A program made the translations under genes and the position numbers. Shown here in pieces: positions 1 through 7,230 of a DNA stretch of 7,230 nt. The DNA comes from Zygophlyctis sp. KS116 (taxonomy: Eukaryota; Fungi; Chytridiomycota): the NCBI GenBank assembly GCA_054661495.1, contig BAAFSQ010000412.1, positions 1 to 7,230 of the forward strand, in the 5' to 3' direction. The notes under the pieces are model-generated. The model made no database searches. It saw only the letters and a list, made by a program, of their open reading frames with translations, and had not been told where the DNA came from. Positions within the stretch are counted from its first letter, which is position 1, and the number at the start of each line of letters is the position of its first letter.

Positions 1-461
1 AGAGAAACATCATCCAACTCTTTTAAATTTGAAAAATGATTTAGTATTTCTAGTCTATATCCCTTAACTAGAGAACAAGGATTCCCTCTTAAATTTAAAT
101 ATTGAATTCCTTTTGGTAAAGATTTAAAGTCTGAAATTGAATTATTTTCCAATTGTAAAACTTGTAAATTCTCTGTATTTAATTCTATTTGAATCAGAGC
201 ATTATTTCCAAGAGATAAAAACTTTAAGCATCCACTAGAAATTGTAATACTTGTTAGTAAATTATACTGAAGATATAAATGTGTGATATTTCTTGGTAAA
301 TCCAAATCAAAAATCTTTAATTTCTCTCTATCCAGCCTTAAATGTGATAATTCCTGTAATTGTTTCATAATATCAACCTTTTCTATTAAATTTCTTCTAG
401 CTATAATATCCATCAGAGTCTCCTTTTTAGAGATTGGTTTTAGAACTGGTTTCCTCAACAT
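1..461 (-). CDS. SDS22-type leucine-rich-repeat protein with LRRcap, LRRC46-like (3' end outside window)
   Basis: ATG at 461-459 and an open frame to the window edge, so it is missing from the ORF track. Translation: MLRKPVLKPISKKETLMDIIARRNLIEKVDIMKQLQELSHLRLDREKLKIFDLDLPRNITHLYLQYNLLTSITISSGCLKFLSLGNNALIQIELNTENLQVLQLENNSISDFKSLPKGIQYLNLRGNPCSLVKGYRLEILNHFSNLKELDDVS. It has LxxLxLxxN repeats followed by the GNPC...YR...L..LD cap. The LRRC46 assignment is from recalled motif similarity (RNL, RLDRE), not a search. Confidence 0.85.
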   Translation of the reverse strand, partial: MLRKPVLKPISKKETLMDIIARRNLIEKVDIMKQLQELSHLRLDREKLKIFDLDLPRNITHLYLQYNLLTSITISSGCLKFLSLGNNALIQIELNTENLQVLQLENNSISDFKSLPKGIQYLNLRGNPCSLVKGYRLEILNHFSNLKELDDVS

Positions 462-492
462 AACTTTGAGGGGATTTTAGTAAATTTCCTTT

Positions 493-900
493 CTAGATAC
501 TTCTAATCCACTTTTCCTGACTTGAAAGAAATCCTTCATAATCCCAATCCTTAATTTCCAATTCATGTATAGATTTATTCCAAATATAAACCCATGCATT
601 TATACTAGAGTCTCCAATTTGAATTTCTAAAAGTTCTCTCTTATACTCTTGTCCTTCGAAAACATCTAAAATCCCTAAATGATCCACTGGTACTTTTTTA
701 AGAATTCCAGTTACAGCAGAGTCTTGTTGTTGAATAATTGCAGGATATATTCTATTCTTGACACAAACTCTCTTGTAATTATTTAAAATTCCACTATGCT
801 TTACATAGTCATCATGGGTAGAATTGACAACATTATTATAAATGTATTCAGACATTAAACTTCCATAAACAAATATATTTTCCATTTTATAATTTTCCAT
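493..900 (-). CDS. AIG2-like / gamma-glutamylcyclotransferase (GGCT/GGACT fold) protein
   Basis: Intronless 135-aa ORF with family motifs IFVYGSLM, YPAI, LDVFEGQEYKR, AWVYIW and WDYEGF. The true start may be the second ATG at 885. Confidence 0.9.
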   Translation of the reverse strand: MENYKMENIFVYGSLMSEYIYNNVVNSTHDDYVKHSGILNNYKRVCVKNRIYPAIIQQQDSAVTGILKKVPVDHLGILDVFEGQEYKRELLEIQIGDSSINAWVYIWNKSIHELEIKDWDYEGFLSSQEKWIRSI

Positions 901-970
901 AAACTCTCGGACACTCTCACTTGAACACTGGATAGAAACTCTTAAAACTATCTATACTTGAATCAGCCTC

Positions 971-1002
971 TCAGTCAGTCGGTCGGTCGGTCGGTCGGTC
1001 GG
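971..1002. repeat. Tetranucleotide microsatellite (TCAG)2(TCGG)6 in a divergent intergenic region
   Basis: Read directly: tcagtcag followed by tcgg x6 at 979-1002, between ATGs at 900 (-) and 1032 (+). Confidence 0.95.
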
Positions 1003-1031
1003 ATCATTAGATCTAAGAACATAAGCAGACC

Positions 1032-2437
1032 ATGGGCAGACCAACGACCGCCGCGCGCAGTCAAAAAATGGAAAAACGAAAACGATTTGATGATGAGCTG
1101 ATAGATTTAGAGAATCCTGGAGCTGATGATTCTTTTCTAAATGAATATCTAGAAGATGAAGAAACTAAAAAGAAATTAAAGAAATCATCACCACCAAAGA
1201 CTATAAAGATATCGTTCAAGAAATTTGCTCCTCTTCAGTCTGTTGGGCAGGAACAGGCAATCCAGGAAACAGTAACAGAACAGACAGAACAGACAGAACA
1301 AGAAGAACAAGAAGAACAGTCAAGCATGATACAAGAAGAAAAAACTAGAGAAAAACAATTAATAGAGCCACAAAAGGAAAAAATCTCGTCTTCTCTGTCA
1401 TTGATGGCAGATAAAGAAAATGAGACTAAAGAGGAAAAATTAGTAAAAGATGCAGTTTCTTTAGATAAAATACAAGAGAATATACTAGAAATTCAGGAAA
1501 ATAAGGCTTTAAAAAAGGTTGTAAATGATAAAAGACTAAATTATGTACCAAAAGAATCTAGATTCTTGGGTAATTTTTCTTATTTAATCTAAATAGGTCA
1601 TGTATTGTATACAGGAGCTCATAAATATTCTCCAGGACTTGAAACAGATGAAAATTTAGAATTATTCTTATTACCAAAATTCTCGGTTTTAGAACATTAT
1701 GCATTGTTACAAGTTCGGATTCCAGCAGAATTTTTAGTTTTAAAAGATAATTTAGCTATAAAAGCAAATGCAGTTTGGGGAACAGGAGTATATACAGATG
1801 ATTCTGATGTCGTTGCAGGTATTTTAATAAAAATTTAAAAGAATTATTAGCACTCATTCATTCAGGAAGTTGGAAACATCAAGAACTCAAGCCTAGTCAT
1901 GATTTAAATGTAACTCTAAGAATTCTACCACGTCTTGAAAAGTATCAAGGCTCATCTAGACATGGGATTTCATCACGGTCTTGGGGTTCTTTTCATGATG
2001 GAGAGTCATTTAAAATTGAAAAAGTTGAAATTGCTCCTTTGGGATCTGCTAAAAAGTTGGGTAGGAAGAAAGGATCTAGAGAATGGATAGATCAATCTAG
2101 TAGTCTCAAGGATGAACCTATTTTAGTGATGACTTTAGAACAAGGTTGGAAAAAGTAAATAATTTTAAATAATATGTCTAGATATTCTCTAAAATCTCTA
2201 AATTCATCTACATGGACTCAAAAACTAAAATCCTATAATTTAATTTTTATGGGTAATGATGATTCTACAAAATTTGAATTATCGTGGAATCCAAACGACT
2301 CAGTATTCAAATTATCAGATCAATCCACTTTTAAAACTTTTAAGGCCTTGGAATTTAATGACAAGGGAATAGTACTCGATGATGAGGAGATAAATTTATC
2401 AAGGTATGTATGGAAACATCAAAATGAAAATTTGTGA
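1032..2437 (+). CDS. RXT3: Rxt3-domain protein (Rpd3L/Sin3 histone deacetylase complex subunit-like); exons 1032-1569, 1597-1818, 1851-2154, 2182-2437; ~439 aa
   Basis: Splicing GT-AG introns of 27, 32 and 27 nt joins three track ORFs and an unlisted exon in frame. The product contains LLPKF...VRIPAEFL...VWGTGVYTDDSDVVAALIHSG...DLNVTLRILPRLEKYQGSSRHGISSRSWGSFHDGESFKIEKV, which is characteristic of the Rxt3 domain. The last exon is less certain; without it the protein stops at 2158. Confidence 0.85.
1275..1319 (+). repeat. 9-nt coding tandem repeat x5 (TEQ TEQ TEQ EEQ EEQ)
   Basis: acagaacag acagaacag acagaacaa gaagaacaa gaagaacag in the acidic low-complexity N-terminus of the Rxt3-like gene. 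Confidence 0.85.
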
Positions 2438-2451
2438 AACTTGTCTTTTAA

Positions 2452-3116
2452 ATGTCTAATCTTTTGAATGAATCTAATGTTCCCAATGCAACCATGTACT
2501 TATCTGATTTTGAAAAGACTAAACAACCTCTCCCAGATTCGATTAATGACAACCATTTAGTCGTTGAATCTAATCAGACACCTGAATCTAGTGAAAATCC
2601 CATCAATGACTCTAATCAAAATTCAATCATCAGATCATGCGGTAAGTAAATTCTCTTAAAGATTAGACAATTGCACTAGAGTCGGACAAAGATGTGATCG
2701 TAAACTCCCATGCTCAAGATGCATTTCCTTCTCAATTGAAAGTGGTTGCAGAATTCCTTCAAGAACCATTCGGAATTCTGAAACTAAAGTCGATAAACTG
2801 GAAATACTTTCAATCGTTTGTTCCATGGTCCTATTAGAAGAATCTTCTCCGCCTTTAGACCACACAAAGAATTTTGGATTTACAGCTCAAGAATTAAAGT
2901 TTTATGAATCCGCATTTCTCTAGTATTAAAGACTTTGTCTATGTTAAGCCTATTGTTGGACAAAGACTTAATAAAAGAATCCGTACAAATCCAAAAATCG
3001 ATACAATTAATTTTAAAAATGAAACCAATAGTCAACCTGAGACACTTTTAAACAATTATAATTCAATTCTAGAGCAAGCAACTCTAAAAAATGTAAATCC
3101 ATTATTTAAACATTAG
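2452..3116 (+). CDS. Small Zn(II)2Cys6 binuclear-cluster protein; exons 2452-2641, 2667-2898, 2924-3116; ~204 aa
   Basis: Removing the 25-nt intron 2642-2666 (GTAAGT...TTAG) gives RSCDNCTRVGQRCDRKLPCSRCISFSIESGC, i.e. C-x2-C-x6-C-x5-C-x2-C-x8-C. A second putative 25-nt intron 2899-2923 (GTTTTA...TTCTCTAG, weak donor) joins in frame to track ORF 2904..3116. If it is retained, the protein stops at 2923. Confidence 0.8.
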
Positions 3117-3160
3117 ATGTCACTGACGAAAACAAGACTTTATTTCAAGAAACTACTAGT

Positions 3161-3701
3161 TTAATAAAAGAAGCCCAGAATCTTTCCTCCAACTTTCTTT
3201 CTTCTAGCTTCTTCATGATCCATAATACCAGCAGAAGTGGTCAACATTAAATAACCAAACTGACGAGATGGTAACAGATTTCTAATCCAGTTTTCAATAT
3301 CTTTTTGCTTAACAGAGAATCTAGGTGAGATTACACCACACTTGTTTAATCTTCCAATGAGTTGAACCACAATTTTTCCTGAACGATGATCATCAATAAT
3401 TTCAAATTCTCCAATATATCCTAAATTGTTAGTAATATTCTATAAATGTGGGCTTGTATAAAACCAGTAAAGTTACTTTAATGATCGTAAGACAAGACAA
3501 TAATATAGGAATGATTTAAAAGGCCTGAATACCATCAGTCCCAGTTATACATTCCAAAATGTAATACATACCATGTTTTTGCATGACAGATAAAAATTTA
3601 ACAATGACTTTAGAGGATGGTCTGATGAGAACCTGTCTTTTCCCTCTCTTTTCAGCATTGACAATGCATTTCAAGCAATCAGCTAGAACAGAGACTCGCA
3701 T
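3161..3701 (-). CDS. RPS22: 40S ribosomal protein uS8 (S22/S15a); exons 3701-3572 and 3420-3161; 129 aa
   Basis: [78 protein letters not shown]...GGKILGFFY is highly conserved eukaryotic uS8. Intron 3571-3421 has a GTATGT donor, a TACTAAC branch point (3434-3428) and a TTTAG acceptor. Confidence 0.98.
3444..3557 (-). ncRNA. Intronic box H/ACA snoRNA, probable snR44 ortholog
   Basis: Hairpin 1: GGAATG (3555-3550) pairs with CATTCC (3513-3508), with upper stem GGG-a-CTGA/TCAG-g-CCT. H box ATATTA (ANANNA) at 3506-3501. Hairpin 2: CTTGT/ACAAG, ATCA/TGGT, TAAAG/CTTTA. ACA at 3449-3447 followed by TTT. Pocket sequences are complementary to recalled rRNA targets (see findings). The ends are approximate. 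Confidence 0.88.
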
Positions 3702-3872
3702 TTTTTTTAGATTTTAAACCTTGTCAAGGACGGTTGATGGCGTAGTATTGTACACACCTCGTACCTAAGAAAGCACGGCCCTACCTTGGTGTCCAATGTT
3801 CCTTCCATGCAACCTACCGTACAACCTACCCAGGCTCCAGTATAGGCTCAATGTAGGCTTGTTGAACTTTAA
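3702..3872. promoter_or_regulatory. Probable bidirectional promoter RPS22 / SEC11 with CAACCTACC direct repeat
   Basis: 171-nt gap between divergent ATGs, visibly GC-richer than its flanks. CAACCTACC at 3810-3818 and 3822-3830, CCCTACC at 3779-3785, and AGGCT x3 between 3832 and 3859. Confidence 0.55.
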
Positions 3873-4453
3873 ATGGATTTAGGATCACTACTCTCTCTTC
3901 CTCCCAGAAAATTAGCCAGACAAGTTTTAAACTTTGTCATGGTTGTAGCCTCTGCATATATGGCTTGGAAAGCATTGTCCTTGTATACAAACTGTGAATC
4001 TCCAATTGTTGTTGTTTTAAGGTACGCCTGCAAGATAATATTAGTGAATCTATGGAACCTGCGTTTGCAAGAGGGGATTTACTCTTTTTAACTCTGGATG
4101 ATACTCCTTATCAAGTGGGAGATATTCCTGTTTTTAGAATCAAGGGTCATGAAATTCCAATCGTGCATCGGCTATTGGAACTTCATATTGATAATACTAC
4201 TGGAAAACATTATATGCTAACTAAAGGGGATAATAATAGAGTAGATGATCGTGGTTTGTATAATCCTGGACAATTTTGGATTTCACAAGATGAAGTTCTT
4301 GGAAGAGTTCAAGGGTAGTTTTCTTTTATAATATTTAGACATGCTCCTTATTTAGGAATGGCTACAATTCTATTGAATGATTATCCTCAATTAAAGGTTG
4401 CTGTCTTGGCAATACTAGGATTAACAACACTCTTGTCAAAAGATGAGACTTAG
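3873..4453 (+). CDS. SEC11: Signal peptidase complex catalytic subunit Sec11 (peptidase S26B); exons 3873-4021, 4045-4314, 4339-4453; 177 aa
   Basis: The spliced product has [44 protein letters not shown] and [20 protein letters not shown]. Introns are 23 nt (4022-4044) and 24 nt (4315-4338), both GT-AG. Stop TAG at 4451-4453. Confidence 0.97.
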
Positions 4454-5210
4454 TAACAAGTGATGTCAATATACTCTAGGAATGCAGAGGTAAAACTCTT
4501 GTTTCCCCAATGAATTGGTCCTTTTGCCCATTCATTATTACCAGCATCCCAAATTGAGAATTGAATCTGAGAAGGGGTGGTAGGAAACCATCTTTCGTTT
4601 GCTCCAATCATTTTTGAGGTTGAACTAGACTTTTTCAAGACTCGGACAGGGGAATTATTGATGGACCAAATAATTTGATCAGGACTCCAATCTATAGTGT
4701 ATGTATTGAATCCAGTAGAAATAAAGGGGCCTTGGACTCGAGTCCCATGAATTGCATACTCTGGGATTCCCTTATAAAACACATTAGTCTCGGCTGTTTG
4801 AGGATAAGCGCCTAATATTTCCCAATCAATTTCATCTTTTATATCTGACATTGTAATGAATGCAGTCACACTTCCAGGCATATGTGAAGCTCTAAATTTT
4901 GCAGATATCTTTCCGTACTGTATAAATCTAGTTGTAGATATTCTAGTACCAGTCGCCACCCCCTGTGATTGTTTTATTAACAACAATTCTGCTCCATTAT
5001 TAGACATCTAATGCATTAAAATGTAGATAATACTCTAATGTTTGATGATCCATAGTCAACAGTGAAATCATACTTTGTTGGATTCACATTCTGACCAACA
5101 ACAATCCTTGATTGGTTTAGATAATACCGACCAGCCTTGCAATTTGCATTATTCAATGCAAGTACCAGAAAATTTGTACATGTCAACAAGATCAATCTTA
5201 CCGTTAGCAT
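4450..5210 (-). CDS. GH16 Crh-like chitin/glucan transglycosylase, paralog A (secreted, no tail); exons 5210-5034 and 5007-4450; 244 aa
   Basis: Signal-peptide-like MLTVRLILLTCTNFLVLA and a 26-nt intron at 5033-5008. Motifs: YGKISA, GSVTAFITMSDIKDEIDWE (catalytic EIDWE), YTIDWSPDQIIW and FPTTPSQIQFSIW. Confidence 0.92.
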
Positions 5211-6312
5211 TTTGATGAAAGTAAAATTTGAAGCTGGTTGAAACATTTCCATTCAACAATCGTTTCTAAAAGAGATTGAATATAAATTATAGTCATAAAT
5301 TGCATTAGAGAGAAATCAAGAGGATATGAATTCGATTTAGGAGAGTATTTATCTAGACCAAATTGTCTATTGATTGATCCATTGATTAAAACGCTATCTA
5401 GCTCTGATCCACTCCATAATCTATCAGAAGGGGGATAAGTGATTGAATGATATGCTGATGAATATGGCCAAGAAGAAACCGGGTTATCTTCATCGTCATA
5501 GCATTGAATATCTATATTGCTGAAAGACGCTAAATAGCGCTGATTTTCGCCCCATTGAATCGGCCCTCCTGACCATGAAGACGTTCCCAAATCCAAACTA
5601 TCTCCTCCTCCCCATATTGATATTTGAATTAATGAAGGAGTTGTAGGAAACCAATTCTCTCCAGGCGGCGTCATTGGAGAAGTTGAATTTGATTTTAAGA
5701 CTGTTCGAACAGGAATATCATTGATCAACCATGTGAGTTTTTCGTGTCTCCAATCGATTGTATATGTCTGATACTGATCATAGCTATTATTAAGAGTATG
5801 CATATCTTCATGTGTATATTCTGATATTCCTCTATAAAAGAAATTGCTATGAGCCTTAAAAGGAAACTGCCCAGTGAACTCCCTATGCGTGAGTTTTTCA
5901 AATATCATACCAATCGATTTCATCCCGAGACTGGGATAAAGTAATGAATGCAGTCACAACTCCAGGTACAGTGGGAGCTTTGATTCTTGCTGATAGCTTT
6001 CCGTAAAGTATGTAGCGAATGGTGCTCAGGCGAACTCCTAGCGACGTTTTGCCGTTCCTAATAATACTCAGCTGTACACCTTCAGGATTTAACTGTTTTC
6101 ATAAAGTGGTGCATAATTACCAAGACATTTTCTGGTGAATAATCAATGCTAACGTCATAAAGTTCTGGATTAACATGAGTTGAATTAAATGGATTGCTTA
6201 TCACTCGAGAGGGGCTAAATTTAATAATCCCAGAGACACAATTCCCAGTTATTGATGGATCAGATACTACACGACTCATTGAATATATTAATGTTGTTAA
6301 TATAAGGTTCAT
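5204..6312 (-). CDS. GH16 Crh-like transglycosylase, paralog B; exons 6312-6121, 6092-5911, 5882-5204; ~350 aa
   Basis: Two 28-nt GT-AG introns (6120-6093 and 5910-5883) restore ...ENVL|LNPEGVQLS...YGKLSARIKAPTVPGVVTAFITLSQSRDEIDW|EFTG...YTIDW...FPTTPSLIQISIWGGG...GTSSWSGGPIQW. The C-terminal end is less certain. Confidence 0.9.
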
Positions 6313-6394
6313 CTCGTTAATGCGGAAATGGAAAACGTCCGAAACTTCTCATTATCTGCAAAGTGTATCAAAAAGATTTACGTACTTAATGTCT

Positions 6395-7230
6395 TCAAAG
6401 ATATAATAAAAACAATGATAAAACACAAAATAATGGCATGGGATTGGAAGGAGCTCCACTATCATCCAATGTCTTATTTCCATTCATTTCTGCGTTATAA
6501 GTTGCTGTAGCACCTAAAGTTGAACTTTCATCTTTTGTCATCGTCTCATGCTTGTTAGAATTGTCAGTTGTCTTCGAGCTTTCAGAACTTGAAGCGGAAT
6601 TATTGCCCTGCGTGGTAGTGGTTCCATTCTTATCAGTAACAATTGCTATTTTTGATCCATCAATTTCTGATGTTTCAGGAGGAAAGTCAATTGATGAGCC
6701 TCTAGGCTGGGTAGGCCATGACTTGACAGGTTTATCTTTATCATCATAGCACTGAATATCAATAGACTTATAGGTGACAGAAAAATTTGTGGCAGATCCC
6801 CAATTAATTGGACCTCCTGCCCAATCTGAGGTTCCTTTATTCGGACTGCTTCCACCATCCCAAATAGAAATTTGAATCCGAGAAGGAGTTGAAGGGAACC
6901 ATCTTTCTCCTTGAGGAGTCTATAATATGAGTTTGTAAAAAATACCATGGGTGAAATAGAATTCTCTCTTAAAATTGTTCTTGCGGGTTTTCCGTCAATG
7001 ATCCAGGTCAGAGAGTCCCTTTTCCAATCGATTGTATACAGATGCGAACCTACTATTCCATCTCCTGGAACTGGAAGGAGTTCATTGTGAATTCCAAACT
7101 CTTCTATTCCCTTGTAAAAGACATTGCTATGAACTTTATCTTTGTGCTGACCAGTGAATTCCCTATTGAGTCAAAATCTAAAGCAAATTACCAATCAATT
7201 TCATCATGCCTTTCAGACATTGTAATGAAA
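6395..7230 (-). CDS. GH16 Crh-like transglycosylase, paralog C, with S/T-rich linker and predicted GPI signal (5' part outside window); exons >7230-7192, 7162-6946, 6919-6395
   Basis: FITMSERHDEIDW|EFTGQHKDKVHSNVFYKG...YTIDWKRDSLTW...SPM|TPQGERWFPSTPSRIQISIWDGGSSPNKGTSDWAGGPINW...DIQCYDD..., ending DDSGAPSNPMPLFCVLSLFLLYL* (TGA at 6397-6395). Introns are 29 nt (7191-7163) and 26 nt (6945-6920). Confidence 0.92.

Follow-up and report, generated by a model that had tools for sequence, protein, structure and literature searches.

RPS22 (uS8) of the chytrid fungus Zygophlyctis sp. KS116 has a single intron, which very probably encodes a box H/ACA small nucleolar RNA (snoRNA) of the snR44 family. 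The gene lies on the minus strand of a 7,230-nucleotide (nt) stretch of DNA (contig BAAFSQ010000412.1 of assembly GCA_054661495.1, positions 1 to 7,230), which is called the window here and whose numbering is used throughout unless another contig is named. An snR44-like RNA had been proposed for this intron in an earlier examination of the window that was made from the letters alone (the sequence-only reading). In Saccharomyces cerevisiae, snR44 guides the pseudouridines 18S-psi106 and 25S-psi1056 (PMC7641733, PMC5699541), as that reading had stated, and the SNR44 gene resides within the second, coding-region intron of RPS22B (PMC5291244, PMC9068511). The RNA in the window shares with yeast snR44 the H/ACA double hairpin, the direction of hairpin 1 to the 18S U106-equivalent and of hairpin 2 to the 25S U1056-equivalent, and an RPS22 coding-region intron as host (PMC5291244). 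It is a new, compact and currently unannotated snR44 member in what is probably an ancestral host intron, and an ordinary example of a well-known class.

The RPS22/uS8 (S15a) gene occupies 3701-3161 of the minus strand and is divided into two halves, 3701-3572 and 3420-3161, as follows.

3572..3701, minus strand: RPS22/uS8 exon 1, ending ...K-H-G in phase 1; matches Pfam Ribosomal_S8; junction present in RNA contigs
3421..3571, minus strand: sole intron of RPS22/uS8, 151 nt; a 151-nt gap in RNA contigs of runs X8, X15 and X17
3161..3420, minus strand: RPS22/uS8 exon 2, 260 nt including the stop; matches Pfam Ribosomal_S8; 85-92% identical to chytrid S15a/S22

Both exons flanking the 151-nt intron match Pfam Ribosomal_S8, and the protein of exon 2 is 85-92% identical to S15a/S22 proteins, the top matches all coming from Chytridiomycota. 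The host gene named in the sequence-only reading is thereby identified, and the "early-diverging fungus" it had suspected is a chytrid. The intron carries a GTATGT 5' splice site, a TACTAAC branch site at 3434-3428 and a TAG 3' splice site. Direct evidence of its removal comes from assembled RNA contigs of the metatranscriptome runs X8, X15 and X17, in which position 3572 is joined exactly to position 3420 with GT..AG ends on the minus strand, confirming the proposed 151-nt intron at 3421-3571.

Within this intron, folding recovers the hairpin-H box-hairpin-ACA layout of a box H/ACA RNA on the minus strand, with a predicted 3' end, and in agreement with the architecture proposed earlier. The guide strands of both pockets also lie exactly where they had been placed (TATAACT at 3549-3543, TTTAA at 3520-3516, CTTACG at 3491-3486, or TCTTACG from 3492, and TTTA at 3462-3459), as do the boxes. 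The parts of the RNA are listed below; model R1 is a covariance model described later in the text.

3444..3555, minus strand: predicted mature H/ACA snoRNA, ~112 nt, from the fold and the match of model R1; predicted ends at the base of hairpin 1 and 3 nt past ACA
3508..3555, minus strand: hairpin 1; lower stem 3555-3550/3513-3508, 7+7 pocket, upper stem and loop 3542-3521
3543..3549, minus strand: pocket 1, 5' guide strand UAUAACU; pairs with AGUUAUA of the organism's own 18S just 3' of U107-C108; invariant in 7/7 sequences
3516..3520, minus strand: pocket 1, 3' guide strand UUUAA; pairs with UUAAA of the own 18S just 5' of U107; 14 nt before the H box; invariant
3501..3506, minus strand: H box AUAUUA, fitting ANANNA; first and third A invariant in the alignment
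3451..3498, minus strand: hairpin 2; lower stem 3498-3493/3456-3451 (one mismatch), pocket, upper stem and loop 3485-3463; helices 3 and 4 co-vary
3486..3492, minus strand: pocket 2, 5' guide strand UCUUACG; pairs with CGUAAGA of the own large-subunit (LSU) ribosomal RNA (rRNA); 3' G opposite a C of the own LSU
3459..3462, minus strand: pocket 2, 3' guide strand UUUA; pairs with UAAA of the own LSU just 5' of the target U; 13 nt before ACA; UUU invariant
3447..3449, minus strand: ACA box, followed by UUU; ACA in 6/7 species, AAA in Powellomyces

Hairpin 1 has a minimum free energy (MFE) of -14.7 kcal/mol (z = -3.4), and none of 200 shuffled sequences was as stable. In its MFE fold a lower stem of 6 base pairs (bp) leads through a symmetric internal loop (7+7) to an upper stem of 8 pairs with one A/G mismatch, and the H box AUAUUA begins one base past the hairpin. 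The pockets lie at the distance from their boxes expected of the class, ~14-16 nt upstream, with pocket 2, at 13 nt, one short by a strict count. Outside the predicted RNA the intron amounts to 39 nt, of which 16 nt are upstream and 23 nt downstream, the branch site residing in the downstream part.

To place the pockets on rRNA of the same organism, the assembly (G000; 12.7 Mb in 1,175 contigs) was searched, yielding the 5' 158 nt of the nuclear 18S at the end of one contig (C28, 1-160) and most of the LSU on another (C637). Other matches resembling small-subunit rRNA, on contig C172, look organellar. Pocket 1 forms 7+5 = 12 Watson-Crick pairs with no wobble around 18S U107, bracketing U107-C108; no other site of 9 or more pairs in an H/ACA arrangement was found for this pocket in the available rRNA. 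U107 sits in the sequence context of yeast U106, the one-base offset presumably coming from a one-base insertion upstream relative to the yeast sequence. Pocket 2 forms 7+4 = 11 Watson-Crick pairs, likewise with no wobble, at position 784 of the LSU contig C637, where it brackets U-A, and this was the best site found. Both pockets therefore bracket the snR44 sites to which the sequence-only reading had assigned them, and the fit to the organism's own LSU is better than the fit to the yeast sequence quoted there.

As a control for chance, 200,000 shuffles of the intron (20,000 dinucleotide-preserving) were scored for pockets that pair by 6+4 bp or more with either a-priori site and are followed 13-16 nt downstream by an H or ACA box, whether or not stems could form. 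An 18S pocket was present in 1,306 of the 200,000 shuffled introns and an LSU pocket in 315, and seven contained both.

Further support is found in bases where guide and target have changed together. The organism's own LSU reads ...AUACGUAAG (that is, ...AAAUACGUAAG), with a C at the position opposite the terminal G of the guide; this position is variable in the Rfam eukaryotic LSU consensus, where it is a lower-case g, and the C pairs with G in an rRNA helix. The G:C guide-target change was compared with the Rfam consensus guide, with the guides of relatives and with yeast rRNA. The 3' G of the pocket 2 guide occurs in the window copy alone, the six chytrid relatives and the Rfam snR44 consensus all having A, and the yeast LSU has U where the KS116 LSU has C. 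In pocket 1, the guide starts with U opposite A of the own 18S (AGUUAUA), whereas the Rfam snR44 consensus has G, and the yeast 18S reads AGUUAUC at this target. The guide thus departs from Rfam snR44 at two bases, U for G in pocket 1 and G for A in pocket 2, where the chytrid rRNA differs as well. These matched changes in both pockets argue that the guides are under selection to fit the organism's own rRNA, and they illustrate cleanly how a guide base can follow a substitution in the rRNA that it targets.

Comparison of the window with RPS22 loci from eight named chytrids places an intron at the identical point, in phase 1 after K-H-G, in all eight. Six of them carry a homologous RNA (Boothiomyces, Globomyces, Entophlyctis helioformis, Polyrhizophydium stewartii, Rhizoclosmatium globosum and Powellomyces hirtus) in introns of 176-354 nt. 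These RNAs have the intron position, the four guide strands, the architecture and the co-varying stems in common with the window copy, and differ from it in length, the extracted sequences measuring 138-156 nt with a few flanking bases counted in; upper stems and flanks are shortest in the window copy, which is also the only one whose LSU guide ends 3' in G. Across the window and the six relatives, the invariant parts are the four guide strands (near-invariant overall, as the terminal G/A of pocket 2 differs), the first and third A of the H box and the A-A of ACA. In the Powellomyces RNA (L017:1245-1393), ACA is replaced by AAA and the H-box region is not a clean match to ANANNA, which may reflect degeneration of the box or an error in the assembly.

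The stems, by contrast with the guide strands, vary with compensation. The lower stem of hairpin 1 reads GGAAUG/CAUUCC in the window, CGCAUG/CAUGCG in Boothiomyces and UCGAAG/CUUCGA in Rhizoclosmatium, and co-variation is seen in 6 of 7 pairs of this stem across the seven species. For the whole 26-pair structure, pairing occupies 84% of cells and falls to 36-54% on sliding the 3' partners by 1-3 columns; compensatory change on both sides is present in 16/26 pairs, and the observed values were reached in 0/500 column shuffles. The seven sequences are a small and related set, and the shuffles take no account of relatedness, but the slid-partner control keeps it and still separates clearly. RNAalifold returned the same two hairpins from the seven-sequence alignment. 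The alignment of the K-H-G intron across fungi, which had been suggested as a check, therefore shows kept boxes and stem covariation among these chytrids.

Membership in the snR44 family was assessed with covariance models. R1, which was built from the six chytrid orthologs without the window, scores 42.7 bits on 3444-3560 of the minus strand (E 8.4e-07; ~17 kb from five sources searched). Over its full length, the Polyrhizophydium RNA is matched by the Rfam snR44 model (RF01262) with 40.4 bits (E 5e-05), the gathering cut-off of that model being 33 bits. As the Polyrhizophydium ortholog passes Rfam and aligns with the window copy, the window RNA would be snR44 by a membership that is transitive but well supported, in line with the orthology first proposed. 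The consensus guides of Rfam snR44, AUAACU/UUUAAG and UCUUACA/UUUA, stand in the same hairpin order as those of the window RNA. Further traits of the family are also found, namely the 18S psi106-equivalent from the 5' hairpin and the 25S psi1056-equivalent from the 3' hairpin (both predicted, by pairing), a coding-region intron of RPS22 as host, and a structure supported by co-variation. The window RNA differs in size (~112 nt, against 211 positions in the Rfam model), and its host gene has one intron, whereas yeast RPS22B has a 5'-untranslated-region (5'-UTR) intron besides.

Several observations weigh against this assignment. The Rfam snR44 model gives no match to the window, nor to the intron alone at E up to 10, so that the window copy does not reach the 33-bit cut-off which the Polyrhizophydium ortholog passes; the Rfam check suggested in the sequence-only reading thus failed on the copy at issue and succeeded on its ortholog, and the same result makes it fair to call the RNA likely unannotated. 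Taken whole, the 151-nt intron is no more stable in its fold than shuffled versions of it (z -0.96). In the four RNA runs the inside of the intron is covered by no contig, which says little either way as the contigs are low-depth metatranscriptome assemblies from libraries not aimed at small RNAs. The specificity scan covered 18S only over the first 158 nt, the part present in the assembly. Hairpin 2 is the weaker of the two, with z = -1.8, a mismatch in the lower stem and an MFE fold that partly closes the pocket; the 3' side of its pocket offers only 4 bp, and the gap from pocket to ACA is 13 nt, compared with 14 nt in 5/6 relatives. A second, weaker LSU site for pocket 2, at position 1640 of C637 (L004/L003; ...AUAGA-U-C-CGUAAC...), allows 5+5 pairs including one G-U. 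Finally, the LSU site of pocket 2 would be the equivalent of yeast U1056 by homology to snR44 and by its resemblance to the yeast sequence.

The points concerning hairpin 2 bear on the alternative that survives best, in which a true H/ACA snoRNA is present whose hairpin 1 alone works, at the 18S site, while hairpin 2 is structural or guides another site. The four pairs on one side of the pocket, the 13-nt spacing, the lower-stem mismatch, the modest z-score and the 5+5 fit at the second LSU site are all in keeping with it, as is the RNA in the same intron of Phycomyces, which keeps the guide of hairpin 1 and has different guide strands in hairpin 2. Second-hairpin targets specific to a lineage have been reported in six fungal H/ACA families (PMC5824354). 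Against it, the hairpin 2 guide strands are conserved across chytrids, and the 5' strand pairs 7/7 with the own LSU, including the G opposite the lineage-specific C. A total of 11 bp is also within the working range of H/ACA guides, and we consider a guide with a single working hairpin improbable.

Less probable still is that the RPS22 pre-mRNA bears here a structured element acting in cis on its regulation, autoregulatory or of the RNase III type as in yeast RPS22B, with no trans-acting guide. The introns of yeast RPS22B do include regulatory structure (PMC9068511; RNase III-mediated degradation is cited in PMC8476143), and the RNA contigs contain no stable intron-derived RNA, as such an element would allow. 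The yeast regulatory element resides, however, in the 5'-UTR intron and not in the snR44 intron (PMC9068511). In the chytrids, moreover, it is the guide strands and box positions that are invariant while the stems vary with compensation, which is the signature of a guide RNA and not of a protein-binding stem, and Rfam snR44 scores one ortholog above its threshold. Chance resemblance within an AT-rich intron, or a relic in decay that has lost its function, would suit the unremarkable fold of the whole intron and the missing Rfam match on the window, but is refuted for practical purposes by the shuffles, the co-variation and the match of a model built from other species, the boxes and stems being intact and the guide tracking a substitution in the own LSU.

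An snR44 RNA carried in the RPS22 intron would be made and used through the pathway of assembly, splicing, debranching, trimming and isomerization that is established for intronic H/ACA RNAs. Cbf5/dyskerin is encoded in the same genome (DKCLD domain, 114 bits). Together with Nop10, Nhp2 and Gar1, it would assemble on both hairpins within the transcribed host pre-mRNA; the intron would be spliced out and then debranched, and exonucleases would trim it to the protein-covered ~112-nt RNA with a 3' end 3 nt after ACA. Hairpin 1 would then pair with 18S around U107 (yeast U106) and hairpin 2 with the LSU around the U of ...UAAA-U-A-CGUAAGA... (yeast U1056), each placing an unpaired U in the Cbf5 active site for conversion to pseudouridine. 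Accumulation of the RNA, its exact ends and both pseudouridines are predictions of this scheme. The finding leaves the understanding of H/ACA RNAs unchanged; its contribution is one more snoRNA gene in this genome, overlooked by Rfam-based pipelines, and the prediction of two conserved pseudouridines in the rRNA of an uncultured freshwater chytrid.

In order to follow the pairing of host and RNA beyond chytrids, RPS22 loci of other fungi were considered. In Phycomyces blakesleeanus (Mucoromycota) the K-H-G position is occupied by an intron of 260 nt that contains an H/ACA RNA (L020:1182-1316), which R1 matches at 41 bits. The 18S guides of the window RNA recur in its hairpin 1 (UAUAACU/UUUAA), and the guides of hairpin 2 differ (UUUUGCA/UGUAC), so that the second target has probably been switched in this species; the RNA also gives a weak match to Rfam SNORA84 (23 bits, E 0.37). 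Introns at the same position without such an RNA were found in Gaertneriomyces (L011, 71 nt), Gonapodya (L018, 68 nt) and Paraphysoderma (L023, Blastocladiomycota, 68 nt), and these fungi must either have the guide elsewhere or have lost it. The RPS22 copies examined in Yarrowia and Basidiobolus are intronless. As the intron is kept without cargo in some lineages, its position is older than the present distribution of the cargo, and the snR44 RNA was lost or moved on several occasions.

The occurrence of the RPS22-snR44 pairing in chytrids, in Phycomyces (in modified form) and in budding yeast suggests that it is probably ancestral to most fungi. We lean, with some reserve, toward the fuller view that the pairing predates the chytrid/Dikarya split at one fixed position (phase 1, after K-H-G, occupied also in Mucoromycota and Blastocladiomycota), that in this intron-minimized genome the cargo alone sets the length of the intron, and that the RNA is among the most compact of double-hairpin H/ACA RNAs (~112 nt, with 39 nt of non-cargo intron). 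Only seven H/ACA families were traceable to early-branching fungi in a 2018 survey (PMC5824354), and snR44 is not named among them in its main text. Analogous deep pairs of host intron and snoRNA are RPL7-snR59/39 and NOG2-snR191 (PMC8476143), which, like RPS22-snR44, combine a ribosome-related host with a guide-RNA intron at a fixed position across most fungi. They involve other genes and other RNAs, and the RPS22-snR44 pair is not described in PMC8476143.

The RNA would also account for the size of its intron. The sequence-only reading had set the 151-nt intron against 12 others of 23-32 nt. A 23-nt intron of the SEC11-like gene (4022-4044) is removed in an RNA contig, and a frame-joining scan gave four further candidates of 25-33 nt (2155-2181, 2642-2666, 5910-5883 and 267-235). 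On the basis of the spliced SEC11 intron and these candidates, the contrast of one long intron among tiny ones is real. Introns at the RPS22 site measure 68-71 nt in the three relatives without the RNA, compared with 176-354 nt in the relatives that carry it, and the 39 nt of non-cargo intron in the window is close to the 23-33 nt of its neighbors, allowing for the branch site. The RPS22 intron is therefore a near-minimal intron around an RNA, which explains why it is the only long one in the window. The earlier suggestion that it was spared from shrinkage by its cargo fits these sizes and is plausible, the handful of loci suggesting that the cargo sets a floor on intron length here. In a genome with introns of ~25 nt, an outlier is a good place to seek non-coding RNA and, if cargo does set the length, long introns in such genomes would be a near-direct readout of snoRNA genes.

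Searches for other relatives of the RNA returned resemblances only. In human SNORA50 (RF00407), the pocket sequences of the 3' hairpin align with hairpin 1 of the window, AUAACUGGG ... CCUUUUAAA, and SNORA50 acts on the equivalent 18S site, psi105. It scores 11 bits against the window (E 9.3), far under its cut-off of 90, the matching hairpin being the 3' one and the host gene another; this is resemblance and not membership. A match of mir-4000 to hairpin 1 in the Rfam search was spurious. When R1 was run against the whole assembly, a single match, on contig C319 (22.5 bits, E 3.8, not significant), was obtained among the 150 of 1,847 candidates that were scored, and the window locus itself was absent from the returns; the search was thus non-exhaustive, and nothing on paralogs follows from it. 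A pattern scan of metagenomes with three guide motifs gave 107 stretches, 80 of them returned as loci, of which 78 were analyzed (L062 and L082, from human-gut assemblies, were outside the set). None of the 78 scores with R1 at E up to 0.01 and none lies beside RPS22 exons, and they look like chance matches in AT-rich DNA.

In the window, RPS22 adjoins a SEC11-like signal peptidase gene and GH16 genes (3873-4318 on the plus strand; 4450-5923 on the minus strand). A Peptidase_S24 gene neighbors RPS22 in Entophlyctis and GH16 genes do so in Polyrhizophydium and Globomyces (L013, L014 and L015 for the three genera together), a case of local synteny across chytrids. At least a quarter of the sampled words of window 3100-4400 were found in 14 DNA runs from ~12 studies of freshwater, lake water, aquatic and wetland samples, three of which runs may be the source sample; the source organism or close kin seems to be widespread in fresh water. 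Two RNA contigs (X8 record 12 and X17 record 5) are 90-95% identical to exon 2 over window 3239-3421 and break at the junction at 3421, beyond which their sequence is a diverged exon 1. A third (X18 record 8) has 16 differences. Chytrid strains or species that are related to this one and splice at the same position are expressed in the same lakes.

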